A stretch of 64,000 bases of DNA. Origin: Pavona decussata (lineage: Eukaryota). Under the pieces are notes generated by a model that was given only the letters and a program-made list of their open reading frames with translations, ran no database searches and was not told the DNA's origin. The stretch spans positions 992,001 through 1,056,000 of the forward strand of contig CDRNST010000143.1 in NCBI GenBank assembly GCA_977016875.1. Direction: 5' to 3'. Shown piece by piece: positions 43,418-63,784 of this stretch. Made by a program: the position numbers and the translations under genes. Position 1 is the stretch's first letter. Each line of letters starts with the position of its first letter.

Positions 43418-46400
43418 ATGGAAGTTGTAGTTAAACCGTATAGGCAAGTTCCACGTGGTGGAGGTGGAGGAAGAGGCCGGGGGCGCGGAAGAGGGGGCGG
43501 TAGGGGCGGAAGGGGTGGAGGATCCGGAAGAGGGGGGCGCAGTGGAGACGGAGCCTCGCAGCATCCCCGTCAAGTTAGGCTTGGATTCAAAGCACTTCAA
43601 GATGTAGAGAAAAAAAGCCCGGACGAAATCGTCCTCGATTTAACATCCAGTCGATGTTTCCCTGCAACAGGGGATTTGTTAGAGCAGTCACCAATGAAGG
43701 ATGACTGGATCGTTCTGATCGTCAGCATTGTTGCCAAAGCGTGTGGTTGCAGCTCTAAGGAGTACTTGTTAAAGCTGCTTAACCTGCTACCACAGTCAAT
43801 GTTTCTCAAATTACACCTGAGAGCATTCCTCAACAGGCTGTCCGCTTGCAGAATGTCTGCCTCCGACGTCGCTACGTTTTTGAGAAATGTCCTCAAAATA
43901 ATGAACGAGTTGCTCCGAAGATTTCCGAACTCCTACGCCGATCTTCCGGTGAACGACTTGTTCTGTGGAATCAAGTTTTTGTCTGACAGTGGAGAGCTAA
44001 GCGACGTCTCACTTGTGAAAGACGTGGAAGCACTGTTAAAACTGAAAAATCAAAAGGCAGACGAGCTCAAGAAACAAGAAGAGGAAAAGCAACACAAAAG
44101 GAGGCCTCGCAGAGATGGTGAGAATATTTTTTAAAAGGAAAAAGAACTGACGCCGGCTGTTTCAGTAGTTGATCCGTGTAGGTCTTCTTCTTGAGCTTCC
44201 TTTGGGGATTTTGGAGAGCCTACTTTCAATTCATGACAGACAGCCCAAGATATCAGACTTCTCGTACTTAAGATATTTTAACCTGCGTGGCCGTGTGCTA
44301 GAAAGGAGGGGGAAAGAGGAGATTCGGCCGCGCGCGAGGCGAGTGATTCCCTGGCTCTTTTCTCGGCCTTTCTAGCACCTTCCACGAAGGCTAAAGATAT
44401 TTAAACTTCTTTAATTTGTCCGGCTCAAGGAAAATCGAGGGATGATTGAGCGGTCGATCACGCAAACGAGTGCAAAACAGGCGTCGCCTCCCGCGAGGAG
44501 ATTCACCACGATTTTCACGCGCACTTGGTTGTTTGGCTTGCTCTTCTTAATCCCTTGGAGAAATAAAGCACTAGTCTTTCGCGGTAGTCTGTGGCCATGA
44601 AACCGGTATTCGTGAAATTTTGAGAAGAAATCGAAGGATCTGTAGAAGTTCCCTTCATTAACCTGTGTTTGCACAACATTTCTTGTTCTCAATTTCTTTT
44701 AGCACAGTTTAAAGGCATCATTCATGTCCATGGAATTAGAAGATGGGAACTAAATATTTTCTCGAAATTGACAACTGAAATCGCCAACTTGAAACAGCCA
44801 AACAGAACCTTTTCTTGATTCACTCTAAAGGAAATTACTGATATAACTTTTTCACTATGTTTAGCTGGCGAGAATGACGATGTAAATCCACCTGACGATT
44901 TTCGTACGCTAAGCGTTATACCAACACAAGAAGACATCTTGACAGCGGAGCGACCCTTTCTCAGAAGAAACATAGTTGATGGGAGTTACCAAAACGCGGA
45001 GCATTATTTGGACGTACAATTTCGGCTCCTTCGAGAGGACTTCGTCAGGCCTCTCCGTGACGGGATCGCGAAGCTTTTGGAGCGTATCGGCTCCGCAAAT
45101 ATTGGCGCCTTGCAGGACATTCGCGTTTACAAGGATGTTCGCCTGTTGTATCCCGTTTGTACGTCTAACGGCCTCCGTTACAGGATCAAATTTGATAACA
45201 CCAGGCTTAGGCATGTGCGCTGGGAGAACAGCAAGCGTCTTATCTTTGGCTCGCTGATGTGTTTGTCCAAGGACAAGTTTGAGAGTTTTGTCTTTGCCAC
45301 TGTGGCTAATCGCGACGTCAAAGAGCTAAAACAAGTAAGCTGACAATTAAAGCAACTGTAAGGTTTTAACTTTGCTTCGTCTCTCCCGCGGTCTGGACAA
45401 ATTAAATTTTGCAATCTGACATTGACAGCGATTTTCAATGTCCACGTGCACAGTGGACTATTCTCTGCTATGCTCGTAACACTGAAAGTGTCACGAGAAG
45501 ACAAGATTTCTTTTATCTGGGCCCTCTCTTTTCATGTACTTCACACGAGCCAAACCTGATTACAGTTTAGGTGGACCCAAATTCGCACGTCTTTTCGCGT
45601 TTCACACCGGTTATCGTGTTTTTACTTTCACAACTGAGATGTGATTGGGTTATTGCAACAGTGGTTTTGTTTTATTTGTTTTCCCTTTTTCTTTCTCATT
45701 GGCTAGATGTAATAAGTGTGCTTTTGTTTACTTTAGAGCAGTTTCAGTTCAATTGAGTGTCGAAAGTAATTTCGCGTTTGCTTTAGTTTTGCTTTACTGC
45801 ACTCTGTGATTAGGTGGCATCATTTGGGTCACTTTTTCAACCAATGAAAGTAAAACTGGCAAACCCAGTCGTGACCTGCTCGCATTCACTTTCCTCTGTC
45901 TGGCGCCAGTGACGTATCTTTGGTTTTAATTTTGATTGTTTGATTGCGCTGTTCAAGAGAGGTTGAAAAGGTACCCCTTCATCTTCTCTTGGCTATTTTA
46001 ATCCTTCCTGATCGATCAGAGTAATAAGTTGGTTTTGGTATTCGACACTCAATTGAAAAGCGCTCTAATGGCAAATGCCTTTTTAAGTTCCTAATCGATG
46101 GTCAAGACTTAGAAAAGCTAGGGCAAGATGTCATTATTCAATTCATAATTCTATTTACAAGAGGTTCACCCTTTATATTAAGACTACACTCTTGGCACTC
46201 TTGGTATTTTTTGTTTAGGGTATCGTAGAAATCCAGTTTATCAATTTCTCTGATAACGTGAGACTTGAAGAAGGAGATGTGTACCAGATGGTGGAAAGTA
46301 CTGTTTACTTCGAAGCTTATCGCCACATACTCGAGGGGCTCAAAGAAGTTGATCCACAACATTTACCTTTACAGGTAATGCTTAATCAATCACTGAAGTG

Positions 46401-49400
46401 ACTATTGACTGCTAAATGGTCGCGTTTTTCTTTAAATAACGAGGGAAAGAGGTGAAAGTTATCAAAAATGGAACAACATAATGAGACTTGTGAATTGAAT
46501 TATAGAGCTTGCATTGGAAACTTTGATTCTCCTCAAATTAAGTTATCAGGCCTCCTCCTAAGATTGCGACTCGCGACTGATCAAGTAGAAATTTGAAGAT
46601 TGGGTGTGTAGCTGGCGCCGTAAGTTTTCATTTTAGGAGAGTTGTCCAGTTATAGCAAAACTTTTGCAAATAATTCGAACACCGAGGCTGTGAACTGTGG
46701 ATATCTGTCGCATCAGATCACAAGCCACAACGGTATTTGACCTTTGATAGGTGAAGGATGTTAGTGACACGTTTCTTTGATGTTTTATTCAAACAGAAGT
46801 ACATTGTCAATTGTGAGAAACTAGTTGAGCCTCCTGCGTACCTGAGGAACAGGTATCGTGGACGAGTGACCTTTGACCTCACGCCCATCATGAGCAAAGA
46901 CAGCAGGAATGCGACTACAAGGTATTACAAATAAATAGCAGCTACAAGGAAGAGCAGCCCGACTGATTATAAAAAAGAAGTTTTTTATTTTTCTGGTTGT
47001 AGAGTCGTGCACTTCTGCCAGATGTGATAACTAATCAAGGGACACGTCCTCTGTTTTCATCTAATCAGGGCAAACGTCCAGTGTTTTCAACCAATCAGGG
47101 CAAACGTCCAGTCTTTTCAACCAATCAGGGCAAACGTCCGGTTTTTTCAACCAATCAGCGGCAATCCCAAGACATTTCATTCTGTGTATTTTCGCGCGCT
47201 TATCGCTGTTCGGTGTACATGTCGGATCAGTTTCATTGTGTTTTTCTCGGCTTTTGGTGGCGAAGAGATGACGATGTTCTCTTGGTCAGATATGATATAA
47301 GAACAGTCGGTACCAGAAAACGAAGGTACAACATCAGCCGATATCAAGTTTGCATACTAGCGATGTACGTGAAAGGCAATACTGAAAACGACAGTCTTCC
47401 TCGGTAGGGGTAATAGAAAAATCGTAAACAGCTTGGAGACGTTAATTTTGTAGGGATGAGTCAGACTAGAAAAGGCCGAGCGCCTGTGAGACGAGAAAGA
47501 AATATTGTCAATAACAAGGGAACAATGAACCATAGAGATACAATGCCGTTTCTTTTTGTTTTTCGTCTCCCCATTTTCTCCACAACCTGAGTGCCCACCC
47601 GCGCGAAAATGCCCGCCCACGAACGCTAGACGTAAATATCAATTCCGACTGTTAGCTCTATTACATTCTTGCTAAAACGCTTTTGTTGATTCAATTTACA
47701 GCACTCCTTCTCTAACACAGATGAGACTACGACTTGCAGGGCTTAACCTCAGAGACGGCGCTCGAAAAGGTGAGTGACACGCTCTCTAATTGGAGTGACT
47801 CTTTCGGTGAAATGAATTAAATCTCCGAGTCCAGAAGAACTTAAGCCTTAAATCGATTTCTATACTTAACGAAGCGGCTAAGTAAGCATAACAACTTCCC
47901 AGAAAATTTAGAGATTGCTTATACACGATTATGTATCTAGGCCCAATCTTTCAATTCAAGGTTAGTTTCACCCTATAATTTATCAGTGAAACTTAAAATA
48001 AATGTCAATTCCAGTTCATCTTGTCTTGTTTTTCGGTGTTACTTTCCCTCGGCTATACTTTCTACATTGGACCAAGAATTAGCAGCAAAAATGCTTTTGA
48101 ATAAGATGAAGACGAGCCTAGTTACCGTTCAATCCGGGATCAACGTTAATCGTCCAATCATGTGCGCGTCCGTGCTGATCGGACGTGTAAATCGTTCGTC
48201 CGCTCGAAAAAGTTACTAAAGTTGAATTTAACTTGTATAATGACTGCCAAACAGTCAAAGAAAGAGAATGATTCTCTTAAAGCACAGCTGGAAGTATTGA
48301 CCAAAGAAATTTCAATGCTAAAAGCGACAATTAGTAATGCTGAATCAGCAAATGACACTCGTGCAAATGACCGAAGCCGCCATGATGGAGAGAATCGATG
48401 CAGTAGTTCCGCTAAAGCCGACGCAGAGAAAGAAGAGCGCGAGCATGGCCTTCAATTCCTGAGCAATGAGTACGACGATCTCTCAAGTTTTCGCCGTGAA
48501 GCCATCAACAAAATAAATCTTATAGAGGAAAAATTGAAAAAGCTTGGAGATCGAGTCGAAGAGCTAGCAAACGCCGTTGACTCGGCTGAGCTTTACAGTT
48601 ACCAATACAACTTGAAAATTGTTGGATTGCCTCAAGCAGCGGAGTACGAATCTTCGGAAGCGACCGCAGCTTTATGTCTAAAGCTATTTGAAACCATGGG
48701 AGCTGATCGAATCAACATTAACGACATAGACATTGCTCATCGTGTTCCATCACGAAGAAGATCGAACGAAGGGGCATCGAATGGTAACAGGCCAGACCCA
48801 GTTATCTGCAAATTTACCCGCCGCCTTGCAAGAGATAAGGTCTTAAGCAAAAGACAAGAAGTTAGAAAGGTGTAGTATTCAGAGCTTGGTCTTACTTCCG
48901 ATGACACAGTCAATTATCTTGCCGTCTACGAGCATCTAACTCCAAGATTACAGAATCTACTTTTTGAGGCCAAGAAATTCCAAACCAGCCATCGCTACCA
49001 ATTTTGCTGGGCGAAAGGTTCTACAATCCTACTAAGGCAATCCTCCGACTCCCGTGTCATTAAACTAAAATCCATGAGCGACCTGGAAGTTCTCACCAGC
49101 CGACATCAGAGATAAGTTTGTTACCACAACTCTTAATCTTATTCTAAGCCTCATGACTGTAATAACAAACATTCAAACTTCTCGCCAACGCAGAAATGAT
49201 CTTAAAGAACTACCATATTATAATGTAACTTCATGTCTACTTACCGTCCATGGTCAATTTAATAATAGTTTGGCTAACGATTTACCCACAAAACAACTTC
49301 TAGACAAATTACCTAGTCTTTACGATTTAGATCTCTTTAACCTAAACATCAATGAAGACATAAATCCTGATGAGAATTTTGCATACAAACAATCTCGATC

Positions 49401-52400
49401 TAATTATTACTCCCCGTACAAATTTTCCGAGATAAAGAGTTCCGTATCGGACTCGTCTTTATCCTTTATACATCAGAACATTAGGAGTCTAAAAAGAAAT
49501 ATTGAAAATTTCCAGGATCATTTACTTCATGAATTAAACTTTAATTTTAGCGTAATAGGCCTCTCAGAAACACGGATTACCAATGCTGATGCTAATTTTC
49601 TCACCTTTAATCCTGATATACCAGGTTATTGTTTTGAATATGTCCCAACACCTCTCTCTGCCGGAGGTGTTGGTATGTACATAAAGGAAGGAATTAGCTA
49701 TAAGGTAATTGAAAAAACTTCGAATGTCTCTTTTCAAGGACTGTGGATAGAACTTCAATTTCCCAAAAAGACAAATGTCATCTGCGCTATTTTGTATAGG
49801 CAGCATAACTCTCCTGAGGATTTTCAAAACTACCTTGACTCGTGTCTAGAGAAATATAGCTCCTCCTCCAAACCTATTTACATTCTCGGCGACTTCAACA
49901 TAAATCTCCTCAATTTCGAAACTTGTAGATACGCCAACGACTTCCTACTTTTACTCCAAAGTTATGCTCTAACCCCAGTTATCGATAAACCAACCAGGGT
50001 CCATAGCAGCTCTGCCACACTAATCGATAATATCCTTGCCAGTCAAGTTGATGATCTCGATTCCGTCTTAAGTGGTAATGTTGTGTCAGACATCAGTGAT
50101 CATTTTTCCCAGTTCTGCCTCTTGCCTGCTTATAAACTGCAATTTTCACCTACAGCCATCTGTCGTGAATATCGCGATTTTTCTTCCTTTTCTGACGATT
50201 CTTTCCTAAATGACCTGGAGCAAATTGATTGGGACAGTATAGGCCACTCGAATCGCGATATAAACAAATCATTCTCCACTTTTTTCCACAAAACTCTCAG
50301 GGTGTTAAATAAACACGCTCCTACGAAAATTACCTCAAGGCGTAAAGCCAAACAGCAACTGAAACCTTGGATCACAAAAGGCATCAGGAGATCTATAAGT
50401 CTAAAAAACCAATTCTATCACTCGGGAGAAAACCAAAAATATAAACTCTATCGCAATAAAATTTCAACTTTAACTAGAGTAAGCAAAAAGCTTTATTTTC
50501 ATAACTTTTTCTCGCGAAACTTACACAACACTAAGAAAACATGGAAAGGGATAAATGATTTAATTGGCCGCAGGAAGAAACCGAAACAGACAATTACCTC
50601 AATAAGAGCACCGAACAACAAGAGAGTGATTTCTGACGCACAGGATATATCGAATGTGCTTAACAAACACTTTGCTACCGTGGGCCATAAACTGGCCTCG
50701 GGGACGCCACATTCAAAACTTAATTTTCGTACATACCTCCAAGGGCTGTCGCCCGCAAATTCAAACTCTTTCTTCTTCGATCCAATTATACCTGCAGAAG
50801 TTAGTAATGAGATCGTTTCCTTATCATACAATAAAGCTCACGGATTATACTCATTCCCAGTTCGAATATTGAAATGCGCTAGCCACATATTATCAAGCCC
50901 ATTGGCAAGGATTATGAATTTATCGGCTGAAACAGGAACTTTTCCCAATAAACTAAAATATGCAAAAGTAATCCCCGTTTATAAAACCGGCGACAAACTT
51001 GAATGTGGAAATTATCGCCCTATTTCACTTCTATCTAATATTAATAAAGTGTTCGAGAAACTAATGTTCAACAGAATTAAAAAATTTATTGCAAACCACA
51101 ATATATTATCCACATCACAATACGGCTTTCGCGAATATCATTCCACCGAACATGCACTATTAGATATAATTAACAAAATTCAAACAAACATGGATAATAA
51201 ACTTTTTTCATGTGGCATATTTATTGATCTGCAAAAGGCTTTCGATACTGTTGATCATGGAATATTACTGCATAAACTCAACCACTACGGTGTACGAGGC
51301 ATTGTCAATGATTGGTTTCAATCATATCTATCATGTAGGTCTCAATCAACTCAAATCGGTTCTGTGGTGTCGGAGAAAGAAAATGTATTATGTGGCGTTC
51401 CTCAGGGGTCAATTTTAGGACCGTTACTATTCCTTCTATATGTTAACGACATTCAAGCTTCATCTAGTAAACTAGATTTCTTTTTATTCGCTGATGACAC
51501 GAATCTGCTATTTGCTGACAAATGCTTAAAGACCCTGGAGCTTATAATAAACAAAGAATTGGAAAATGTTTGTGATTGGTTACTAGCTAACAAGTTGACT
51601 TTAAATACTAAAAAATCTAATTACGTATTATTTCACCCTCGCCAAAGAGCGACAGCAAATCGCCTTCACATAAAAGTATTCGACTGCGAACACAATGTGT
51701 TCGAACACCTTGAACAAAAAGATTGTGTTAAGTATCTGGGTGTGTTGATCGACAGCAACCTCTCTTGGCAATATCACATTAATTATATTTCGCTTAAGAT
51801 AAGTAAAACAATTGGTATTATATCACGGTTGAGATACGTTCTACCCACTTCTATTCTTCTTCATATTTACCGTTCTCTAATCCATCCTTACGTTTCTTAC
51901 GGTCTTTCAGTATGGGGCCAAACTTCAAAATCAAATCTGGAGAAAATCTTAATCCTCCAAAAAAGAGCCTTACGTCTAATTTATTTCCGCAATAACAGAG
52001 AGCATGCCATCCCGTTATTCGTATGTTCTAATATCCTTCCAGTTGACATGCTTTATTTCAAATCTATAGCCAGTCTTATGCATGATATCAATAACCAAAG
52101 TGCTCCCCTGAACCTAATAAATCTTTTTGATCGAGTAGATTCTGTGCACTCGTATAGAACCAGGTCTGCATCCACGGGCAAATTTCATATAAAATGCTCA
52201 AAGCTGACACAACTGAGCCACTCATTTTCGAGATTAGGTTGTAAAATCTGGAATGAATTACCGGAATCTTTCCTTGCAAAAACTAAAGCCTCCTTTAAGA
52301 AATGCCTTCAGACCAGATTACTAAAACTTCTTGATCAAGAGGATATTTATGTTGACGTCAACACTCTGATTAAAAACTTCAAATATCAGTGGTATGATTA

Positions 52401-55400
52401 GCTAATATGAAACTTTCTTAATTTTAATTTAGACAGTCATTATTTTTTACTTAACTTATTACACATTAATTATTGGTATATCTTTAAATTATATTCTGTA
52501 AATATATACTAATCAACTGCACTACCCGCCTAGATTAGCCTATGCTATTTGCGGGCTAGTGCATTCTTGCCTTACCTTCGTGAAAAATGTGCTTTAATAA
52601 ATTGAATTGAATTGAATTGAATCAGCGAGTTTGCTAAAAACTGTCGAAAAGCACCAAGCCTTGTTTGCGGACGACAAAACACGAGGATTTCTCCTTTTTG
52701 TTCTCAGGAACTGATGTATCAATACTAAACCTGGCCTCATGGCCGTCTGCTGAGGATCTGGAACTAGACGACTCTCAGTATCGAGCCATACAGATGGCGC
52801 TGACCAAAGAGTTTGCTGTCATACAAGGGCCACCTGGCACTGGAAAAACATACATTGGGCTGAAGGTAAAAATACAATCTGTGAAAGTGTATCAATTGGA
52901 ATTCTATAAATTATATTCAAACTCCTCTTTACAGTCATCAAACAGATGTATGACCGACGCTCTTCGAGGTTATTACAACCCCCCCTCCCCCCCCCCCCAA
53001 AAAAAAAACACCCCATCCCAAGGGGAGACATCTGTGTTGGATGTACTGCTAGGCGAAGTTGCAAGCCCAACGTCCTATCGTTTTATCCTTATCAAACGTG
53101 ATCGACACTCCCGTTGCATTTAACTTAAATTCTGTCAGTCTTTGTGAGACAGTGCTTTTGTTTGCGCATTATCATTGACGACATTAGCATAATAGAGAGA
53201 AATGAGAAAAACGATTGGCATATCTTAACCTGGGACCAGGGTATGATAACACATAAGACGTCCTGAGAATCGTTAGAAACTTTTCTGCCAAGGCATACTG
53301 GCTTCCTTCTTGCACAGATTGCCATTGATTGCCATTGCCGTAGATTGCCATTGTTTTCAGTGTTTTATTTCGCGAATCGGCCGGAAATTGGGTGTCAAAA
53401 TACAAGTTCACTTTGCGCTCCGATACTGTCAGGCCAACTCGAATCATAGCTTGTAAACCGGCGTTTAGAAACTTCTAAGAGGTACTGGCTTAAACTTAAT
53501 CTTTCTGTCTTGTTTGCCGTAGATTGCCAACGTTTTGTTGCATAACAAGTCGAAGTGGGACACTGGAACCGAGCTTCTTGATGACGATCTTGACGAGCGC
53601 TTGCTGCTTTCTGAGCGCCGTCCAGTCCTTGTTGTCTGCTACACCAATCACGCGCTGGATCAGTTTCTAGAAGGAATCCATCAGTTTCACCCAAAAGGCA
53701 TCGTGCGCATTGGTGGCCGGAGTCAGAGCGAGGTTATGAAGGCCTGTGGTTTGTCAGAGTTGAAACACAAAATGCACAAGGTTAGGCTGGTTGATTGACA
53801 ATCTGGTTGGTCAGGCCATGGGTTTGACCAAAATTAGACTGTAAGCGCAGAAGTGAGGGGTTTTTAGGTTGAATTATAGAAATCTGAGCCCAGTTGTTCG
53901 AAGCACGATTAAGTTAATCCTGAGTTAATGTGAACTTTGATTCACGTTCAATTACTAATCAATAAAGATTCGTCAAAAAAATGTTTGTCCCTCAGTTTTG
54001 ACGTAGCCTTTTATTTACCCTAAGGTGGAAATTAGCTTTTGAAACATTATTAACGAGCGGGATAAAAACCTCGGTTAACTTTTAATTGTTGATTAGCTTC
54101 AATCGGCTTTTAAACAACCGGGTCCTGAATAACTGTTAACTCAGTGAAGTCTGACATTTCTACTGCACTATTGTACTGCTTTCACTGACAAAAGACCAAC
54201 ATAGTCACTGACAATTATAAATTTAGCATCTCCACGTTTTTCATATCCGTGACAGTTTGCGGAATGCAAGCTCGAAGGTTCCATCTTTTGAGTGATAATT
54301 GGCGGAGGCAAACAGTGGCAATATTCCATAGGCTATCTTAAGGAAAACAACACAGCGTTTTCTATGCCTGCTTCGTTTTCTACATTGTTGCGATGGTGGT
54401 ACAGAGTAGTGCCGAAAAGTAGCTTATTTTTCGATATCTTGTTGTCTGAATTGCAGAAGACTAATACTGTACTACTCCTCACGTTTATTAAATTCCTACT
54501 TTTATTAAGAATTTAAAAAAAAGATGCACTTTAAACATTTAAAAGAAATCCGAACAGCCACGTAAACCTCTCGCCTGTTGTTCTTGTTGACCATGTTTCC
54601 ACCACACTGTAGCTTAAATGTTGCTTATTCCATAAGTATAATTCTTTACTTTTATTCTAGGACAAATCAGTTCCCCTACACATTAGAAGGGCTTTTTATG
54701 ACGCTCACAGGGAAATGGACGACATCACTGGAAAACTACAGAGGGCAGCCGAAGATCTGAAGAGTTGCTTCGAAAACGTGCTTCATGAAGATGATTTGCA
54801 CGAGCGCGCCAAGAGTATGACTGAGGTTCAATACGAGTCTTTGAAGTCCTTGGTACTGGGAGCAAAAGGCAGTGCTATATTGCACTGGCTTCAGCTGTCT
54901 TCGAACTCAGGAAACCCCAATCTAGGAGGTAATAATCTGTTTTTTTTTTCCAAACAAGGTATTCAAGACCTCTTCTTTGGCAGCTAGATGATGAGGCCAT
55001 TTCCGCATTGCCCCCATCCTCGTTTTCAAAGCGAAGCTTGGTTAATGGGGGAAGCTGCATCTTTTCATTCACATATAAATAAAATTCATTTTCGTTTGAA
55101 TGGCTTGAACCAGAGATTCATTCCAAAAATGGACTATTCCAGTTGTTGCACTGTGGTCCCGAGTTCACCTACTTAGCCACGCAATCAGATGTCAAGAGCC
55201 AACTAGCAAGGCACCTACCAGTTAAAATGGCATTGTTCAAATTTTTCGATATTGTTTTATAATATTTAGGACCACAACGCTAAGTAGTAATCAGTTGTAT
55301 CACCAATAAAGCACAAGTTGTGCATGTAACAAGTTGATGCAAGATAAATATATAATGTTCATCAGATCTCGGTGATGGAGCAGATTGAGACTTTTATCAG

Positions 55401-58400
55401 AACGCACTAGAAGTCGTTATCTAGCCTATCCCACGTATACCCCCAAATAATGGCTCGCTTATTTTAAAAATAAGCCCAATGGTTTTGTAGAACTATAAAT
55501 AGGTCTCTTTTTTAATTTGGCAAGAGGCAGACCAGTTGTCCATTTGTATGCGTAACCGAGTCGTTTGAATGTGTACGTGGCACTTGCTCCAACGCCTTTC
55601 GATTACAAGTCAAGTGCTTTACTGATGCTACGGCATTCAACTGTTCTGGACACAGTTGCATTCATTTGGCGCAGCAATGTGAAATAAATTCAACAAATCA
55701 ACATAACTGATCACATGATCCTTGCTTCCCCTTTAGCTTCAGTACAACCTGTAGCGGTCTTCCCGCTAAACAGTCTCTGTGGTGGACTGGAGAGGATATC
55801 ACGAGCTAACATGGCTACTTTTTCCCGCATTAAATCGGCTCCTGGTGTTGATGGGACTCAAAATGGCTCCATTCTACTAACAGGAACGCCTAATTCATTC
55901 GTTGAAATCCCCAACCGTGCCGGAGGTGGTCTAGATACTACGACCTCTATCACACTCCTTTTGCACGTGTTTCCACTTGGAAACAGAGGACCAATCTTGA
56001 GTTTCCACGAGGATGGCCTGGGAATCCAAATATGGCAAGAAGGCGTGGATGACGGAAAAGGACTTTTGACAGTCCGCTTCGCATGGAGAGATTGTTCCCA
56101 GCCCCCCGCTCTTACCAAAGCAGTGCTGAATATAAACGCCTGGAACTTTATTGGCGCTTCCTATGATCACGACTCTGGAATTGCGCGCCTATGGCATGAT
56201 GGGAATGAAGTAGAAGCTAAGTTTTTAGGCAGAAAAATGGAGCTAGCAACTCAGTTTTCCATCAGAATCGGGGCCTTAGCGACTGCTGGACCGGCACATT
56301 GCTTTCGAGGGAGGGTTGCAGACCTCCATATTTTTGCTGAATCCCTGAGACGAGAAACTGTTCGAGCTGTTGGTGGAATTGTCCCACAAGGTAATTCATT
56401 TATGCGTGTTAGGAGATTTTATTTGCAACTTCGAGACACTAAGAAATTAGTTAATTATAGTCGTTACTCTTGAAGATTGCTCCACTCCTGACACCATAAG
56501 CGGAGAGAGGAAAAAATGTTTTGAATCAGACAAGTTTCTTGAAACTTGTGTGTGGAAATGTTGTCTCAAATATGGAGTTAAAAAAACTCGACTTTTAAAT
56601 ATGGAAACTTAACGTACACAGAGAACGAATCAAACGGCATAGCGCTGGCCCACCATGCACGAGAGCGCATAACCACCGTCCGTAACATCAGTAGTCAAAG
56701 CATTTCTGTCTTAACCTTAGCCTAAATTAGCTTTAATCGTTTTATAGGCAGTTCAATGTAGTTGGCAAATGGATAAGACAAGATGACTAATTTGATATCA
56801 AAGACACAGGAAGTAGGTTTCCCAGTCTTCCGAGCCAGAGGCTCATCAGATTTAAGTTTGAGACGAGCAAAGATGTAAGCGTTGCCTGACTGTTTTCCCT
56901 GACGAATTTCAGTACTTAAGTGGAAGCGTTGACACAAGGAAATATGATATATGTTTTAACACAATCGGAAATAACACAACATAATTTCAACTTAGCTATT
57001 TGTTCTTTCTCAAGCTGGAGCTGAAGCGGCAGGAGAGGACGATGAAGCAAATGCCGAAGAAGAGGAAGATGACATTTACGACCCGGATGTGCTGTATGAA
57101 GCGGATGCTATGCAAGACCAAAGAGTCTTGGACACCGATGACGTCAGTGTGTTCATTGCGAAGTCAGTTATGGTAAAAGGAAAAAGGCTCAAAGTTGTCG
57201 ATCCCTTTTCATCCGGCGGAGAAATCGACGCTGATGGCTGGCAAGTCATGAACGCCGATAAGTTGAAGAAGAGGCTGAAGAGAACAATAATTCAAGAATT
57301 GAGCAGAAAAGATGTTATGCCAGATGAACGAGCGAGAATGGTGAGTCAATAGAGAGATTACCAATGACGCTTACGGCAAAAAGGCAAACGTGAGATATGA
57401 TCACGTGACCATGTTTATCCTATATTGGCCGCTTGGTGTTTTCATGATCAGTTTCTCTGTCAAAACGAGTAGTTTTGCGTTAGCATCAGAGACTTGAATT
57501 AGTTTGCACTATTCACATCTTTGTACTCTTTATTTTAAGAAAACATAAACACGAATCTCACGTTTGAAAGAGAGATTTAGCATCGCGTTTGCGGCAAACG
57601 GCAAACGCCAGGCTGAAATTTTCTCTTTGATGAAAAACCAATGAAGCTTTTTTGGTTTAAGCTTATCTCCACCCAGTCGGCGAGAGCTATCGAGCAAACA
57701 CGAAAAAGAGAGAAGTGAGTGAGAGAAACGCAATCTATGCATTTTGGAACAAACAGCGGCTTGACGTTTCCCGTTTGGCGTTAGCCGTAAACGCGAAGCT
57801 AAATCTCTCTTTTACGGCAAACGGCAAACGAGAGATTCGTCGCGTTCCTCTTTTCTGGAAAACTCGGGTATATAGATGTACATAGTGCAAGGTAATTCTG
57901 GTCTTTGGTGCTAACGCAAAACTACTAATTTTTTCTAAGAAACTGAAAACATTGAACGGCAAATGTAAGGTAAACATGGTCACGTGGTCATTTCTGCCGT
58001 TTGACGCAAAGGAGGTGCTTAATCTGTCTACTGATAAAGTTCATAATCAAGAAAACAAAAAGTAAACAAACCAACAAAAGCTTACTTAGCGTATTTTCAT
58101 ACTAAAGCCAGACCCGCGCCGTTCATTATGATATTTTTTCATGTATTATATATCCGAGAAGTTTCCCTTTTAAAACTAAAACTTGGCGTTAACCGTCGGT
58201 ATGTTCATTTAACCAACAAAGCATAAACAGGTGCAACAAGAAGCAACTTTTCTACGGTCACTAACATTGGGATTTGTGAACCTTTTGTAAGAAAGTACTG
58301 TTGGACGACTGACTAAAGTACATCTAAACTTGCCAATCAGGTTCGAAAAACTGAATCTGAATCGAGATGTTAGCCCAATCCGTTAGTCTCTTGTTGGGGT

Positions 58401-61400
58401 AGTAACTACTTTAACCATTTCCCTGTTTTGATAGTGTGTACCTAGTAACTGACGTAACAATGAGCGGGGAGTGAAAGGACATACTGATTCACGTGAATCA
58501 CTTTTAAAGTAACGGAAGGCACAGCCATATCACAAATCCCCTTCACGTAGAAACCATTCGAGAAACAAATCAGTGAACTGTCTCGTTCCAGATATAAAGT
58601 GTTAAGTTTCGTTTTTCGTTTCCTGTTAATATTTTGTTGCAGGTTAGGAATGTGTGGACGTTGAGCGTTAAAGACCGCTGGCGTTTGTATCGCCGCTGGA
58701 TAATGGACGTTTGTGAGCAGTACCGCCGCACCATTTCGCTTTTCCAAGAACAATTTGAAGAGGGTGCCAAGCGACTGAAGGATATCAAAAACATGGAAGA
58801 CTTCGAAATACTTAAGAACGCTGATGTTGTTGGCTTGACAACGACGGGTAAGTGCAATTGACAAACAGAGGCACTTCTTAGGAACCTTCCGTGCAGGGCT
58901 GGTCGCCATCCTCGTACCCAATTCCTAGGATCGTTTTGGTTAGCGATGGCTCGTCAGCTATCACTTCTAACTTTGACCTCAATTCACCTCTCGGTGATCA
59001 GTTGCACATTACGCTTCCAATCTTTTTTGCCTAACTTGAATTGGGTTTCTTTTTTCTTTTTCGTTTTCTTTTTTTTTTCTGGTTTCCGAGCTGCTTTAAG
59101 GTTACTGTAGGAAACAAACGTATGGCTGTGGAGAGTTTATCGTCTTAAACATGGAACCAAACTTCCGATATTGTTGTTTTGTAAAGCGCAAGATAACCGA
59201 CGCAATGTTGTTTGTTTCAAATACACTTGTTTTGATCACTCAACAATACGGATGGATTAAATCCTTAAAGTACAAGCTTCCAAACTTATCTTTTACAAGA
59301 AATAAGTTCAAGCAAATTTCTCGAGAGAGCCGGCTTTGTTTCAAATCATTTCAAAATCATTTCGAATTTGAAACTCGTGCTTAAGCTTAACGCTCACTCA
59401 GAATGTCGGAATACATTCTAACACTGTGTGGTAACGAGAAAAAGTAGCTCAGAGCGGAAATAACTGGTTTCTTTTTTTAGCAAACATTAGTGTGTATATA
59501 GGAATGCGTGGCAAGCCCAATTAAACACGGAATGTCTACACTGGATTCTACCTATGACTAAACATACAAATTATCTATCTTCACTGTGGTCACTTGCACA
59601 AGGTAGTAGGTCATTACAAAAAATTATCTATGAATGGCACGTGTTCGGAATAACGATGCGGTTTTGATATGAAAACTGACATAACGTGCTTTTGTTGGGC
59701 TAAAACGCGTCTGCAATAACGAAGCGGTTGCCAGTTGTTATACGGTTTTATTATTTTTATATTTTGTTCATTTTGTGACTAACAAACCATAGTAGTTTCA
59801 ATTTCTGTTAATGTCCTTTCCTGTTTATGTAACCTGAAGTGCTTACAAGCATCGCTACCTCTCTCACATGGATGGAATGTCTTAGTTAATTAATTGATTT
59901 TTGCCCGAGTTTCCTTGGTTCGTTGGTTCCTGGGTGGAAAAAGCTTTGGTGACAACTCAGTAAATGAATTAATATGGAAGTTTCCGTCATTATATGTTAT
60001 TTAGGTGCTGCAAAGTACCGCAAACTGATACAAAGACTAAAGCCACGAATAACGATCGTGGAGGAGGCCGCTGAAGTATTGGAGTCGCACATTGTTACCT
60101 CACTAACTCCCGGATGCCAGCACTTGATTCTGATTGGTGATCATCAGCAACTCCGCCCCAATCCCACTGTCTTTGAGCTCGCCAAACACTACAAACTGGA
60201 CGTGTCGCTGTTCGAGAGAATGGTAAAGAATGGAATGCCATTTGAGCGATTGCGCTTGCAGCATCGTATGAGACCGGAAATCTCCAAAATAATGGACCAC
60301 ATTTACGTCAATCCAAAGCTGGAGAACCACAAATCGGTGCAGAATTTTGAAAACATCAAGGGCGTGTCCTGTAACATATTCTTTGTAGACCACGACGAAA
60401 GTGAGGTGGGTGGCCAGTCTCGTCGCTTCTTAGCTCTGATTAGCCTAAAAAAATCGGTATTAAAGATACCGTTATCTGATGAAGATCAAAAAAATATATA
60501 TTGGCTTGACATTTTTTAAACATTTTCCCCGTGAAGCGTCCTCGTTGAAAAAGTAGAGATATGTATAAATTTTAATTCGGCAAAACCGAACAAGAAAACG
60601 AGTAGAATAGAATTGTAGTGGTCGACTCAACCTCCGCTAGCATTCTTCAAGAAGAATGGTTACTCTGGAAACGAAACAACAGTCTCATTGCATGAGGGCA
60701 ACAAATGGTGTTGGGTCAATAAAGATGTTTTTCAAATATGTTTTGCATAGTTAAATCATTCTAAAACTTATCAGGATCACTATTGTTCTAAAATACACTT
60801 CTTCGATGCTACTGTAGGATTTTCATGAGGAAGGAAAAAGCAGATCTAACGAACATGAAGCCAAGTTCCTGGCTGCTCTCTGTCGGTACCTTATCCTTCA
60901 AGGCTACACAAGAGAACAAATCACAGTCCTCACAGCCTACACTGGCCAGTTAATCCAGCTCAAGAAAGAAATGCCCAAAGATTTCTTCCGTGGTGTGCGA
61001 GTCTGTGCCGTGGACAACTTCCAAGGAGAAGAAAACGACATCATTCTGCTTTCGCTCGTTCGAAGCAATGAAGAGGGCAAAATCGGCTTCCTGCAGACTG
61101 AAAACCGAGTTTGCGTCGCATTGTCCAGGGCCAAGAAAGGCTTCTTCTGCGTCGGTAATATCAGTCTGTTGAAAGAAAAGAGCGAATTGTGGGGCAGGAT
61201 AATCGGTGATATGGAAGAGCAAGGGAACGTGGGGAAAGCGTTGACGCTCGCGTGTCAAAATCACCCGCACAACGTGATCCGCGCGTCACGTGCAGATGAC
61301 TTCAAGAAGGCGCCCGAGGGAGGCTGCACGGTGCCTTGTGCCACAAGACTGGAGTGCGGTCATGTGTGTGAAATGGTTTGTCATCCAACAGACCCGGAAC

Positions 61401-63523
61401 ACAAAGAATACAAATGCAATAAGCCATGCAGTAAGACGCTCTGCGCACGCAAGCACAAGTGTCCCAGAAGGTGCTTCCAAGAGTGCGGTCCTTGTGTGGA
61501 GCCTGTGGACAAGCTCCTCCCATGCGGCCATGTCCAAAAGGTCCCTTGTCATCAAAAACGCTCTGAAGTGAAATGCACGTCACCTTGTGGAAAGATTCTA
61601 CGTTGTGGGCATCAGTGTCAGAATAAATGCTCTGAAGAGTGTACCGTGAAGTGCGCCGCCATTACAAAGAAAACCTGGCCCTGCGGACACGAGAACAAGA
61701 CACAGTGTCACGTGAATGAACTCCAGACACCATGTAAGGCGCCTTGTGGTGTGACCTTAAAGTGTGAACACCCTTGTGCTGGTAAGCGTGTGTTCTGTTT
61801 TGCAGATTAATTTTAACTGGTTCTAATTACAAAATGTTGTCTCACGAGTGGGTTTACTCCATAAATATGACAAATTCAAAGAAAATTTAATCAGTAAGGT
61901 TTTCAACACTAATAAAAGCGAAACTTACCTTTAGGCCTAGATGGTTCTATCAGGAAGCATTTAAAGACATTTTAAGAGGTTTTTAGTAAGAAGGCTTGTT
62001 ATAAAATTCAAACTGGAATGACCTGAAGTCAGATGGACGTTTGAGTTGTTACTTTTCCCCAGGGGTTTTAAGAGGACGGATTGGGACCTAAAGGGTCCTA
62101 GTTTCAAGAAAGAATCAGCGTTTCGTAGAGGCTAATATAATTATTTTGATCTTGAACAAGAAATTCAAAAATGAAACAGTTTAACTTAACAAGCAAAGTT
62201 AAAACTGACTGACGTACGAGACTCAATAGTGCAGAGGAATAGAGGATGGCTTCATACTTCATGTGTGTTAAATAAATAGAGATTCGCAGTGGTGTTAATA
62301 TCGAGATATTTTAATAAAATCTACTATTGGCCGGTTCTTGTTTTGTTTTTGTTTTTTTTATAGCGTGTAATTCCAAATCTCCTTTTCGTATGTTCTAGGT
62401 AATTGCAGTCTCTGTTTACGAGGTCGTGTCCATGTTCCATGCAAATCAAGTTGTGCCCGCCCACTCTTCTGTGGCCACGCCTGCACTGAACCCTGCACCA
62501 AGAACTGTCCGCCATGTAAAGAACGCTGTGGCAACTACTGCGGACACAGCAAGTGCCGGAAAAAATGTGGCGAGCCTTGTGAGCCCTGCAATGAGCGATG
62601 CACTTGGCAATGCGAACATCAGAGATGCACAAAATTGTGTGGGGAGCCTTGCAATCGTAAGCGTTGTGATGAACCGTGTAAAAAGCTTCTTCCTTGCCGA
62701 CATCCCTGTATTGGTCTATGCGGGGAACGATGCCCAAAGAAGTGCCGAGAGTGTCACAAGAACGAAGTCACGGAGATTTTCTTCGGAACCGAAGACGATC
62801 CGGACGCAAGGTTCGTGGAACTGGCTGACTGTGGTCACATTTTTGAAGTGGATATGATGGATCAGTGGATGGACCAGGCTCAGGCAAGGGATGATGGGAA
62901 GGCTGTTGATGTACAACTCAAGCGCTGCCCGAAGTGCTCAACTCCCATTCGCACCAGCTTGAGGTACGGCAACATTATTAAGAAGATCCTTGCCGACTTC
63001 GAGCTAATTAAACAGAAGATTTTACTCGGAAACGAGCAGCGCACTCTCGCAGTAAGCAGGCTGAGATTGGAGGTACGCAAGATTGAGAAGTTTCCTGAAG
63101 ACCAGGAGAAACTTGAAAAGTCACTGGGTCAGAGGAGCCTCACTGATGAACAGGTTAACGTGTTCGAGAACCAGATTAGCCTTTTGTCTTTCCTTCAGAC
63201 GCTCAAAGCTAAGATAGAAAAATCCACAGAGACCGAGAGTGAGAGAGCCGCAAAAAGAGTTCAGTCACGCTTTTTCCTACAAGAAACTAAGGAAGATCTA
63301 GAGAGTCTTGTGGAACAAGTCCGGGGGCGTGTCATGGAGATGCGAGTTCGATTCAGCGATCAAGAACTGGAGGAGCTCAGCGAAGAGATGTACAGAACAG
63401 AGCTTGCCGTCGACCTGAAGTTATTGAAGATGCAGCTTGAAATTCGTGGTGTTAAGATGGATGTCACCCACTCCATGAAAGTTGATCGCGTGCAAAAAGC
63501 ACTGGATTCCGGAAAAGCAATTG
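43418..63523 (+). CDS. ZNFX1: NFX1-type zinc finger-containing protein 1 (UPF1-like SF1 RNA helicase), 3' partial, with an inserted LamG-like domain
   Basis: Exons 43418-44117, 44865-45334, 46219-46374, 46797-46921, about 47290 (or 47266)-47347, 47721-47769, 52708-52865, 53523-53780, 54661-54928, 55737-56390, 57015-57340, 58643-58847, 60005-60405, 60818-61781 and 62399-63523 (about 1970 codons in the window). Motifs: YLDVQFRLLREDFVRPLRDGI, QGPPGTGKT, VCYTNHALDQFLE, VEEAAE, GDHQQLRP, VDNFQGEE, VALSRAK, then Cys/His NF-X1 repeats. The terminal RZ-finger exon is beyond the window. Confidence 0.96.
45734..46067. mobile_element. MITE with TA ends
   Basis: TAGAGC...TTCAATTGAGTGTCGAA / TTCGACACTCAATTGAAAAGCGCTCTA. 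Confidence 0.75.
47030..47160. repeat. Minisatellite, about 4 x 30 bp
   Basis: AATCAGGGCAAACGTCCAGTGTTTTCAACC repeated. Confidence 0.85.
48240..49115 (+). pseudogene. LINE ORF1 (coiled coil, RRM-like and C-terminal domains) interrupted by one in-frame TAG at 48873-48875
   Basis: NLKIVGLP...IDIAHRVP...PVICKFTRR precede the stop. The same frame continues with YEHLTPRLQNLLFEAKK...YQFCWAKGSTILLR to TAA at 49113-49115. Confidence 0.85.
49153..52401 (+). CDS. LINE ORF2: AP endonuclease plus reverse transcriptase, 1082 aa, intact
   Basis: APE motifs HQNIRSL, GLSET, GDFNINL, ISDH; RT motifs YRPISLL, QYGFR, IDLQKAFDTV, GVPQGSILGP, FADDT, KYLGVLID. Confidence 0.95.
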   Translation: MTVITNIQTSRQRRNDLKELPYYNVTSCLLTVHGQFNNSLANDLPTKQLLDKLPSLYDLDLFNLNINEDINPDENFAYKQSRSNYYSPYKFSEIKSSVSDSSLSFIHQNIRSLKRNIENFQDHLLHELNFNFSVIGLSETRITNADANFLTFNPDIPGYCFEYVPTPLSAGGVGMYIKEGISYKVIEKTSNVSFQGLWIELQFPKKTNVICAILYRQHNSPEDFQNYLDSCLEKYSSSSKPIYILGDFNINLLNFETCRYANDFLLLLQSYALTPVIDKPTRVHSSSATLIDNILASQVDDLDSVLSGNVVSDISDHFSQFCLLPAYKLQFSPTAICREYRDFSSFSDDSFLNDLEQIDWDSIGHSNRDINKSFSTFFHKTLRVLNKHAPTKITSRRKAKQQLKPWITKGIRRSISLKNQFYHSGENQKYKLYRNKISTLTRVSKKLYFHNFFSRNLHNTKKTWKGINDLIGRRKKPKQTITSIRAPNNKRVISDAQDISNVLNKHFATVGHKLASGTPHSKLNFRTYLQGLSPANSNSFFFDPIIPAEVSNEIVSLSYNKAHGLYSFPVRILKCASHILSSPLARIMNLSAETGTFPNKLKYAKVIPVYKTGDKLECGNYRPISLLSNINKVFEKLMFNRIKKFIANHNILSTSQYGFREYHSTEHALLDIINKIQTNMDNKLFSCGIFIDLQKAFDTVDHGILLHKLNHYGVRGIVNDWFQSYLSCRSQSTQIGSVVSEKENVLCGVPQGSILGPLLFLLYVNDIQASSSKLDFFLFADDTNLLFADKCLKTLELIINKELENVCDWLLANKLTLNTKKSNYVLFHPRQRATANRLHIKVFDCEHNVFEHLEQKDCVKYLGVLIDSNLSWQYHINYISLKISKTIGIISRLRYVLPTSILLHIYRSLIHPYVSYGLSVWGQTSKSNLEKILILQKRALRLIYFRNNREHAIPLFVCSNILPVDMLYFKSIASLMHDINNQSAPLNLINLFDRVDSVHSYRTRSASTGKFHIKCSKLTQLSHSFSRLGCKIWNELPESFLAKTKASFKKCLQTRLLKLLDQEDIYVDVNTLIKNFKYQWYD
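55737..56390 (+). CDS. ZNFX1 internal exon encoding a LamG/concanavalin-A-like (Laminin_G_3/pentraxin-type) domain
   Basis: 654 nt; acceptor CCCCTTTAG, donor G|GTAATT; phase 1-1, matching both neighbouring exons. Translation PVAVFPLN...SFVEIPN...LDTTTSITLLLHVFP...WNFIGASYDHDSGIARLWHDG...IRIG...FRGRVADLHIF. Confidence 0.85.
57350..58030. repeat. Cluster of nested interspersed repeats (ACGGCAAACG family)
   Basis: Repeated CGGCAAACG and CACGTGACC motifs in both orientations. Confidence 0.55.
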
Positions 63524-63784
63524 GTGAGAGAAAAACCCCATAGAGTAATGATACATAAGATGCAACACTGTTTCGCTTTAGGACGAAAAGGATAAACTTA
63601 GGAGTGATGCTAGGCACGAGAACGAAGTGCAGAAATTTGAACCGGCATTAATTCCCAACAAATTGGTTTAGTTTCAATGCGTTTAGGATTTGAGAATAAA
63701 GCTTTCAGACTGAATTTCATCCACCCAACATCCAACAAAAGTAGGTTAAAGGTTATTATTTAATATGCTGAATTCTACACACAT

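Follow-up and report, generated by a model that had tools for sequence, protein, structure and literature searches.

A ZNFX1-family gene and its additional exon

We analysed a 64,000-nucleotide stretch of the genome of the stony coral Pavona decussata (GenBank assembly GCA_977016875.1, contig CDRNST010000143.1, positions 992,001 to 1,056,000 of the forward strand), referred to here as the window, whose own numbering is used unless another contig is named. The gene that surrounds positions 55737-56390 on the forward strand is very probably a stony-coral member of the ZNFX1 family, a superfamily 1 (SF1) RNA helicase with a putative zinc-finger stalk and an RZ-type E3 ubiquitin-ligase module. Within its helicase core, a single 654-nt exon encodes an additional Laminin_G_3 (LamG) domain, which appears to have been captured from extracellular receptor-type modules and to lie on the tether of the acidic plug that auto-inhibits human ZNFX1. 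We hold this picture with high confidence as one joint judgement, which covers the expression of the exon, the identity of its domain, its single capture, the selection acting on it and its position on the plug tether. The features of the gene are as follows (ORF, open reading frame).

44939-45340, + strand: ZNFX1 domain (PF25396), upstream exon region; Pfam E 7e-31, 106.8 bits; the limits are those of the ORF
52706-52863, + strand: Walker A exon (GPPGTGKT) and start of AAA_11 (profile positions 1-31, E 4.4e-7); RNA joint 52863>53521 in 4 runs
53521-53778, + strand: exon E2, helicase motif Ia region (VVCYTNHALDQF) and entry into insertion 1C; RNA joints 52863>53521 and 53778>54659
54659-54928, + strand: exon E3, first part of insertion 1C, with the ...ILHWLQL... 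helix at its end, ending in phase 1; RNA joints
55737-56390, + strand: LamG exon, 654 nt, phase 1-1, 217 full codons from 55739; open frame, Pfam PF13385, RNA joints
57015-57097, + strand: start of exon E5, a D/E-rich linker of about 27 residues from LamG to the putative plug motif; charge, with acidity in all five LamG-type genes
57098-57124, + strand: putative plug-helix homologue EADAMQDQR; match of profile A2 to 9q9z_A
57125-57340, + strand: rest of exon E5 (insertion 1C), donor GTGAGT at 57341; RNA contigs reach 57342, with 2 ambiguous bases
58643-58847, + strand: exon E6, end of insertion 1C and return to the helicase lobe; acceptor ...ttgcag/, donor /gtaagt; RNA supports the 5' boundary
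59998-60420, + strand: exon E7 (matched part), deviant Walker B IVEEAAEV, end of AAA_11 (profile 192-252) and start of AAA_12 (profile 1-74)
60971-61780, + strand: end of AAA_12 (profile 139-194, E 4.9e-19), then Cys/His-rich repeats, putatively of NFX1 finger type (stalk)
62635-63540, + strand: exon of the C-terminal region, with Cys-rich fingers, a CGH...CPKC motif and a coiled-coil-like tail; similar to the C-terminal region of a paralogue
L026:2706-2900, first half L026:1640-1668: RZ finger (PF20173), Pfam; the host gene continues past the window

The LamG exon is a coding exon that is present in every RNA contig seen. The stretch 55737-56390 is free of stops solely in the frame from 55739, and the probability that one frame would stay open over 217 codons by chance is about 3e-5 ((61/64)^217, an estimate that assumes uniform codons). 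The exon is bordered by a polypyrimidine ...ttag/ acceptor and a /gtaatt donor; the upstream exon ends ...GGA G/gt and the downstream exon starts with CT, which gives the junction codon GCT at both ends. With one extra base upstream and CT downstream the exon is in phase 1-1, so that its skipping would preserve the reading frame.

Transcript evidence comes from spliced contigs of four runs, drawn from four studies, that were aligned to 52650-58640. These runs are labelled only as probable RNA, and we take them to be RNA because their contigs are spliced and the introns are empty. GT..AG joints at 52863>53521, 53778>54659, 54928>55737 and 56390>57015 were found in all four runs, with a depth of zero in all four introns (the raw joint 54926>55735 with its cut moved by +2 equals 54928>55737, and 56386>57011 with its cut moved by +4 equals 56390>57015). 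Single contigs of 6471 nt (X1) and 6012 nt (X6) chain the Walker A exon, E2, E3, the LamG exon and E5. For 54700-57300, several runs of this organism cover 0.40-0.42 of the words sampled, which is about the exonic fraction expected with all three exons present. In transcripts of other individuals, ten variants of the LamG exon comprise six synonymous and four conservative changes and no disruptions.

These results agree with a preliminary description made from the sequence alone, which had placed a stop-free 654-nt phase 1-1 exon between 54928 and 57015; frame, splice sites and junction codon all fit this proposal, and the junctions it named, 54928-55737 and 56390-57015, recur exactly in the spliced contigs of the four runs. 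Its suggestion that LamG-containing and canonical isoforms could both exist stands as far as the frame is concerned; the skipping joint 54928>57015, and with it the coexisting isoform, was not seen in the four runs, where contigs drop rare variants and cannot exclude a skipped form. As the spliced contigs carry helicase exons on both sides, the exon is neither left out of ZNFX1 transcripts nor part of a nested one, and the dN/dS value and open copies reported below speak against neutral decay or disruption in relatives; these were the objections that the preliminary description had raised against itself.

Two further observations concern the transcript data. At 52829, 54699 and 55811 all four RNA runs differ from the assembly (e.g. 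55811 A>C, giving Met25Leu in the LamG exon), the reference individual having minority or private alleles at these positions. In the RNA runs, the intronic interval 57450-58050 has a summed contig depth of about 95-720, as against 6-64 for exons, together with numerous divergent loose ends; it represents a repeat family that is transcribed from other places in the genome and forms no part of the ZNFX1 mRNA.

The assignment of the host gene to the ZNFX1 family draws on the presence of PF25396 upstream, an SF1 core with Walker A and EEAA, a long 1C insertion with a putative acidic plug, and an RZ finger. Pfam splits AAA_11 across the host exons at 52706-52863 and 59974-60420, while exons E2 and E7 match the solved ZNFX1 structure (PDB 9q9z_A) at chain positions 735-787 (E 4e-15) and 1072-1205 (E 9.8e-49), respectively. 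The loose end of an RNA contig past 57340 consists of the first bases of exon E6 at 58643, and E6 is colinear in the related loci L016, L013, L014/L015 and L021 described below. Toward the C terminus, the stalk region 60971-61780 is similar to the C-terminal part of an intronless paralogue, and the Cys/His-rich repeats at 61100-63000 resemble the C-terminal region of the paralogue, with no match to Pfam zf-NF-X1 at E <= 1; the exon at 62635-63540 had no match in the Pfam scan. The RZ finger (E 5e-16, 58.5 bits) lies in the last exon, about 1.7-1.9 kb past the end of the window, and its four zinc ligands and its catalytic Cys and His, at offsets 0, 4, 11, 20, 23 and 32, have the same spacing as human C1849, H1853, C1860, C1869, C1872 and H1881. 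Judged by its Walker A motif, its EEAA Walker B and all six of these RZ residues, the window copy looks catalytically complete.

Elsewhere in the gene, a CGH…(about 35 residues)…CPKC motif at 62900-63000, for which Pfam returned no match, could be the Miz-like single-zinc E3 domain of human ZNFX1. An intron of the gene contains a LINE-type retrotransposon, in which a 1082-aa open frame at 49153-52401 (+ strand) is endonuclease/reverse-transcriptase-like; the 237-aa coiled-coil ORF that precedes it at 48162-48875 (+ strand) could be its ORF1.

Fold, origin and conservation of the LamG domain

The exon most probably encodes one complete ConA-like/Laminin_G_3 beta-sandwich. Residues 53-208 match Pfam Laminin_G_3 (PF13385) over profile positions 5-150 of 151, with an E value of 6e-8 and a score of 33.4 bits that exceeds the family cutoff of 27.6. 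An exhaustive representative search returned 614 homologues at E <= 1e-3, and 13 of the 13 core residues that are invariant in the family are kept. An AlphaFold2 model of the domain, built from a 38-sequence alignment, has 15 strands and a short C-terminal helix, with a mean predicted local distance difference test (pLDDT) score of 94.4 and a predicted template modelling (TM) score of 0.92. Foldseek relates this model to ConA-like lectin subdomains with a probability of 1.00 and TM scores of 0.62-0.74, at 9-16% identity. In VIA, the best match is domain 4, the carbohydrate-binding domain, of the arabinanase AbnA (Z 21.4 over 190 residues, root-mean-square deviation 2.6), followed by lectin-like subdomains of clostridial toxin binding regions (Z 18-20), the pentraxin domain of PTX3 (Z 18.0) and SAP (Z 15.4), sialidase lectin/CBM40 modules (Z 16-18), and classical LG/LNS domains (Z 13-14 over about 140-150 residues); the matches to carbohydrate-binding modules are a resemblance at the level of the fold only. 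The single whole LamG/ConA-like sandwich of the preliminary description, and the AlphaFold check it proposed, are thus borne out by a family match above cutoff and a confident, complete predicted structure.

Two narrower assignments were considered and rejected. Membership of the pentraxin family was set aside, as Pfam Pentaxin (PF00354) matched only in part and at 17.1 bits, below its cutoff of 25, so that the structural likeness is one of superfamily level. A classical laminin/neurexin LG (LNS) domain was likewise discarded, given that Laminin_G_1 and Laminin_G_2 had no match at E <= 1 and that LG/LNS structures score below the lectin-like modules.

With regard to its origin, the domain's long database matches (30-37% identity) are extracellular mosaics that carry C-type lectin, F5/8-C, WSC, pentraxin, CUB, Sushi, EGF, PKD-channel or REJ parts, and there were no helicase domains among them. 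In a maximum-likelihood tree, the five ZNFX1-embedded modules and five short-contig fragments form one clade (ultrafast bootstrap 99, SH-like approximate likelihood ratio test 98), whose sister group contains the modules on C90 and C72 (98/98 for the union). These two modules lie on the same strand as, and just upstream of, long exons with five or six PKD domains and a REJ domain; by this arrangement they are assigned to ectodomains of polycystin-1/PKD-REJ-type receptors. The LamG domain is 36-40% identical to its nearest receptor relatives. Moreover, the array and receptor modules share the ...ag/AT ... G/gt phase 1-1 design of the ZNFX1 LamG exon. We therefore consider it very likely, from sequence comparison, that a single capture by exon shuffling brought the domain in from ectodomain LamG modules, of which those of PKD/REJ receptors are nearest: one whole domain occupies a phase 1-1 exon, relatives of the same design occur in unrelated mosaics, and the embedded copies are monophyletic. 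This is in line with the earlier suggestion of a symmetric 1-1 module derived from normally extracellular proteins.

A cysteine pair follows the same division. Among the extracellular modules, most have a Cys at reference position 195 and a second one in the C-terminal tail. Both are lost throughout the ZNFX1 clade, which is what relocation to the reducing cytosol would lead one to expect; one array lineage has also lost both. Inside the clade, the paralogues of this genome each group with a fragment from a different sample, which indicates that the duplications of the host gene predate those species splits.

The genome holds 126 relatives of the LamG exon, nearly all of them open single-exon modules of about 200 codons and many in tandem. 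Two of them stand out as nearest, at 50-51% identity, and share the contig of the window gene, one being about 504 kb upstream; each is placed between the ZNFX1 domain and the AAA_11/AAA_12 exon of another ZNFX1-like gene. In these paralogues (L013 and L014/L015) all exons are colinear with the window gene and the LamG exons are again phase 1-1, which answers the survey of paralogues proposed at the outset with two further open, colinear copies.

Dozens of Laminin_G_3 phase 1-1 exons also occur elsewhere as arrays with a spacing of about 1.2-1.5 kb (C180:885-947 kb, C70:89-188 kb, C318:3452-3466 kb, and also C266, C78 and C436). In modules of the C180 type both family cysteines are lost, with Gln at position 195 and the tail Cys absent.

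An orthologue was found on a 58.6-kb contig of a different assembly (L016), with all seven tested exons in colinear order. The LamG exon there likewise measures exactly 654 nt, aligns without gaps at 82% DNA and 85% protein identity, and keeps the AG/GT borders, while the flanking introns can no longer be aligned. By the Nei-Gojobori method, the LamG comparison gives a nonsynonymous rate (dN) of 0.081, a synonymous rate (dS) of 0.768 and a ratio (omega, dN/dS) of 0.106, far from the neutral evolution for which the dN/dS check had been proposed; two exons of the helicase core give omega values of 0.019 and 0.064, the lower one belonging to the Walker A exon (96% protein identity). The LamG exon is also better conserved than its neighbours in insertion 1C, both against the orthologue (85%, versus 71% for E3 and 80% for E5) and between paralogues (50%, versus 31-34%). 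It is thus highly probable, on these substitution patterns, that the LamG exon has been under purifying selection through at least two duplications of the host gene and a speciation.

The arrangement probably extends further. A metagenome scaffold of 3805 bp (L021; ENA ERZ23499559) carries E2, E3, LamG, E5, E6 and E7 in order, which places the architecture in another organism as well. Its introns are very short, with E2 and E3 almost contiguous and six exons in 3.8 kb, and its LamG groups with the window copy and the orthologue. The exhaustive representative search gave LamG of the ZNFX1 type only in the form of short ORF-like fragments, and three other contigs (L022, L023 and L024) are too short for flanking exons. 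The genome also contains intron-poor ZNFX1-like copies that are without LamG (C51 and C263 type), and PF13385 is absent from all of the 120 database proteins nearest to the C51 type (from Montipora, Oculina and Stylophora).

The RZ region of the two other LamG-type paralogues was observed as well, at L032 (about 3042-3215 and 4479-4560; C143 about 494.5-496.1 kb) and L033 (about 3295-3495 and 4311-4400; C143 about 520.3-521.4 kb). Both keep the RZ zinc ligands (…KCSKG/HVYS…KCP.C…), have Arg in place of the catalytic Cys (offset 11) and lack a His at the general-base position; by these residues they look RZ-inactive, unlike the window copy.

Position in insertion 1C, beside the putative plug

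Cryo-electron microscopy of human ZNFX1 has described two insertions in the N-terminal lobe of the helicase, 1B and 1C (bioRxiv 10.1101/2025.10.14.682297). According to that work, 1C (residues 688-978) is long and variable, resembles no known fold and makes homophilic contacts in both polymer forms of ZNFX1; an acidic plug helix within it (residues 828-836), carried on flexible loops, fills the RNA groove and auto-inhibits the helicase, and the Walker B is a deviant EEAA at residues 1006-1009. As EEAA is found at chain positions 1093-1096 of 9q9z_A, the chain and the published residues are offset by 87.

Insertion 1C of the coral gene can be related to this structure by profiles. A profile built from the post-LamG segments of five coral genes (A2) matches 9q9z_A at chain positions 914-1003 with an E value of 3.2e-6, and aligns the coral EADAMQDQR (EADxMxxQR in the family, conserved in all LamG-type genes) with EADLIQADR at chain 915-923, i.e. 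residues 828-836, the published plug. On the other side of LamG, a profile of exon E3 (A3) matches chain 798-879 with an E value of 0.0012 and aligns ILHWLQLSSNS with MLEWLGLGVGS. From the end of this helix to the plug there are about 35 residues in the solved ZNFX1 and about 34 in the coral protein when the 218-residue exon is left out; LamG has thus been added cleanly to the tether on the N-terminal side of the plug. We thus place LamG, with good confidence as far as alignment can tell, in insertion 1C, on the tether between the LHWLQL helix and the acidic plug homologue. The matches to 9q9z_A recover the "LEWLGL" helix and acidic loop that the preliminary description had given for vertebrate ZNFX1, and the spacing in the solved chain fits its statement that no such domain occurs there; its placement of LamG between Walker A and Walker B of a ZNFX1 helicase-ligase is upheld by the exon order and the in-frame RNA joints.

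LamG ends about 27 residues before the putative plug motif, and the linker between them is D/E-rich, with a net charge of -18 over the first 45 residues of exon E5. The linker sequence is variable yet acidic in all five LamG-type genes. An AlphaFold2 model of the post-LamG segment predicts a helix over LYEADAMQ, which is weakly supportive given its low confidence (pLDDT 50.6).

Single-sequence searches of solved structures with E3, E5 and the 1C of the intronless paralogue returned no ZNFX1, which was reached only by the multi-copy coral profiles. Similarly, a BLASTP comparison of E3 and E5 with the LamG-less paralogues in this genome gave no usable alignments, 1C being too divergent, and the argument for a clean insertion therefore depends on the solved ZNFX1 chain. 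In this genome, 1C ranges from about 280 to about 450 residues, with duplicated plug-like motifs. The longest form was observed in the intronless LamG-less C51 paralogue (L018:1576-9534), whose 1C of about 450 residues contains two tandem plug-like acidic motifs (…IAIE[RK]EADLI[EQ]YQRRIQGDEELLM…, residues about 850-915); these duplicated motifs mark 1C as a remodelling hot spot among coral ZNFX1 copies.

Possible functions and comparison with known systems

The location of LamG beside the plug suggests an extra, non-RNA input to the helicase-ligase. Our preferred reading, which we advance tentatively, is that LamG serves as a binding module for a ligand or partner other than nucleic acid and acts through the plug tether. 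The ligand might be a glycan, a lipid head-group or a protein. Its engagement on the tether could bias the plug out of the RNA groove, thereby licensing the helicase and an RNA-stimulated E3 activity; alternatively, it could hold the auto-inhibited enzyme at a particular surface or target. A more specific version, which we regard as doubtful, is a lectin-gated enzyme with two inputs, in which a LamG-bound microbial or symbiont glycan, lipid head-group, damaged membrane or host partner would pull the 27-residue acidic tether, displace the plug and license both the helicase and the RZ/Miz ubiquitin-ligase. To our knowledge, lectin-gated regulation has not been described for any SF1 helicase.

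Several points weigh against an acting binding module on the plug tether. A shared fold does not show a shared function, and many ConA-like domains bind proteins or only scaffold. The homology of the plug comes from a short profile match (E 3.2e-6) together with an offset taken from one other motif, and the predicted model of the plug segment is of low confidence. Lastly, the two sister paralogues that appear to be without the RZ catalytic Cys and His suggest that a coupling to ligase activity may not extend to the whole subfamily.

Of the alternatives, the one that survives best, though we think it rather unlikely, is that LamG is an assembly module, adding homotypic or heterotypic contacts between 1C insertions and altering filaments or condensates, with no ligand sensing involved. 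The homophilic 1C contacts of both human polymer forms would fit such a role, as would the closeness of the fold to the oligomerising pentraxin domains of PTX3 and SAP and the conservation of residues specific to the ZNFX1 clade (S21, F54, Q97, N156 and F173), while the Pfam Pentaxin match falls below its cutoff. It is also unlikely that LamG is a conditional domain on an alternatively spliced cassette exon, with skipped and included isoforms side by side. The symmetric phase and identical junction codons would permit this, and in some runs the share of sampled words is only about 0.2; the latter may, however, reflect low coverage, and the contigs of all four runs, for all that they drop rare variants, show the included form only.

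An integrated decoy, in which a module of receptor type imitates the ectodomain that a pathogen or symbiont factor targets and an attack on it triggers the helicase-ligase, would fit the finding that LamG exons of PKD/REJ-type surface receptors are its closest relatives, and the host gene does belong to an expanded immune-type family of at least 11 copies with a highly variable 1C. We nevertheless find this reading improbable: identity to those relatives is just 36-40% and the cysteine pair is lost, at a dN/dS of 0.11 there is no indication of an arms race, and it is topologically awkward for a protein of the cytosol to serve as decoy for a target outside the cell. It is less credible still that LamG is a passive passenger, a functionless spacer that a variable loop tolerates; 1C is indeed the most variable part of ZNFX1, with the range of lengths given above, but LamG is better conserved than the adjoining 1C, has a low omega and is open in every copy seen across duplications and species. 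Finally, although the exon lies within a longer ATG-started ORF (55715-56473) of the kind that ORF callers report as a stand-alone protein, an artefact (a chance frame, or an ORF of another, intronic transcript) can be practically discounted, as contigs from four studies splice the exon in frame to the helicase exons that flank it, and the arrangement is colinear in four other loci.

A binding module on the plug tether would be of wider interest for several reasons. How the plug regulates ZNFX1, a helicase and ubiquitin ligase that is ancient and antiviral, has only recently been worked out, and a conserved domain of extracellular origin on the plug tether makes it testable whether the plug is controlled by non-RNA inputs, and also what the cnidarian ZNFX1 expansions recognise. 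Irrespective of function, the locus probably offers a clean, datable case of exon shuffling of an ectodomain module into a cytosolic enzyme, with loss of a disulfide. It should be borne in mind that lineage-specific domain shuffling is common in cnidarian immune genes, and that the function proposed here is one that we infer.

The closest known system is human ZNFX1 (9q9z), which shares with the coral gene the order of ZNFX1 domain, Walker A, motif Ia, 1C, EEAA, putative Cys-rich stalk and RZ finger. The human tether consists of about 35 residues and its 1C has no known fold, whereas the coral gene has a tether plus a 218-residue lectin-fold domain. Coral ZNFX1 proteins without LamG (C51 and C263, and the "NFX1-type zinc finger-containing protein 1-like" entries of Montipora, Oculina and Stylophora) share the helicase core (53-74% identity in E7) and the ZNFX1 domain with it; the C51 type differs from the window gene in being intron-poor, with one ORF of 2653 aa, no PF13385 and a 1C of about 450 residues. 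On the donor side, the LamG exons of coral PKD/REJ receptors belong to the same Pfam family, are one-domain phase 1-1 exons and share the 13 invariant core residues, but they are joined to PKD, REJ, C-type lectin, F5/8-C, WSC, EGF, CUB or Sushi domains and keep the cysteine pair.

UPF1, which is structurally nearest to the ZNFX1 helicase, has its activity adjusted by insertions in this lobe (bioRxiv 10.1101/2025.10.14.682297). Its 1C differs from that of the coral gene in being short and in having no extra globular domain. A beta-sandwich within a helicase core has a parallel in the DEAD-box helicase DDX1, where a SPRY domain lies inside the first RecA-like domain, between ATPase motifs; DDX1, however, belongs to another helicase superfamily and its insert to another fold family, the insertion is, as far as is known, ancient and universal and has no auto-inhibitory plug nearby, and the two are unrelated in sequence. 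Plant NLR proteins with integrated domains offer, by analogy, a precedent for a foreign recognition domain in an intracellular immune protein, and the cytosolic BEACH proteins LRBA and neurobeachin, which contain ConA-like lectin domains, are a precedent for the fold in the cytosol, though their host proteins are unrelated. No description of a LamG domain combined with ZNFX1 was found in the literature searched, and to that extent, annotated gene models lying outside the search, the claim of the preliminary description that none was known holds. ZNFX1, LamG_3 domains and exon shuffling are each known; what appears to be new is their combination, and above all the position of the domain beside a putative auto-inhibitory plug.

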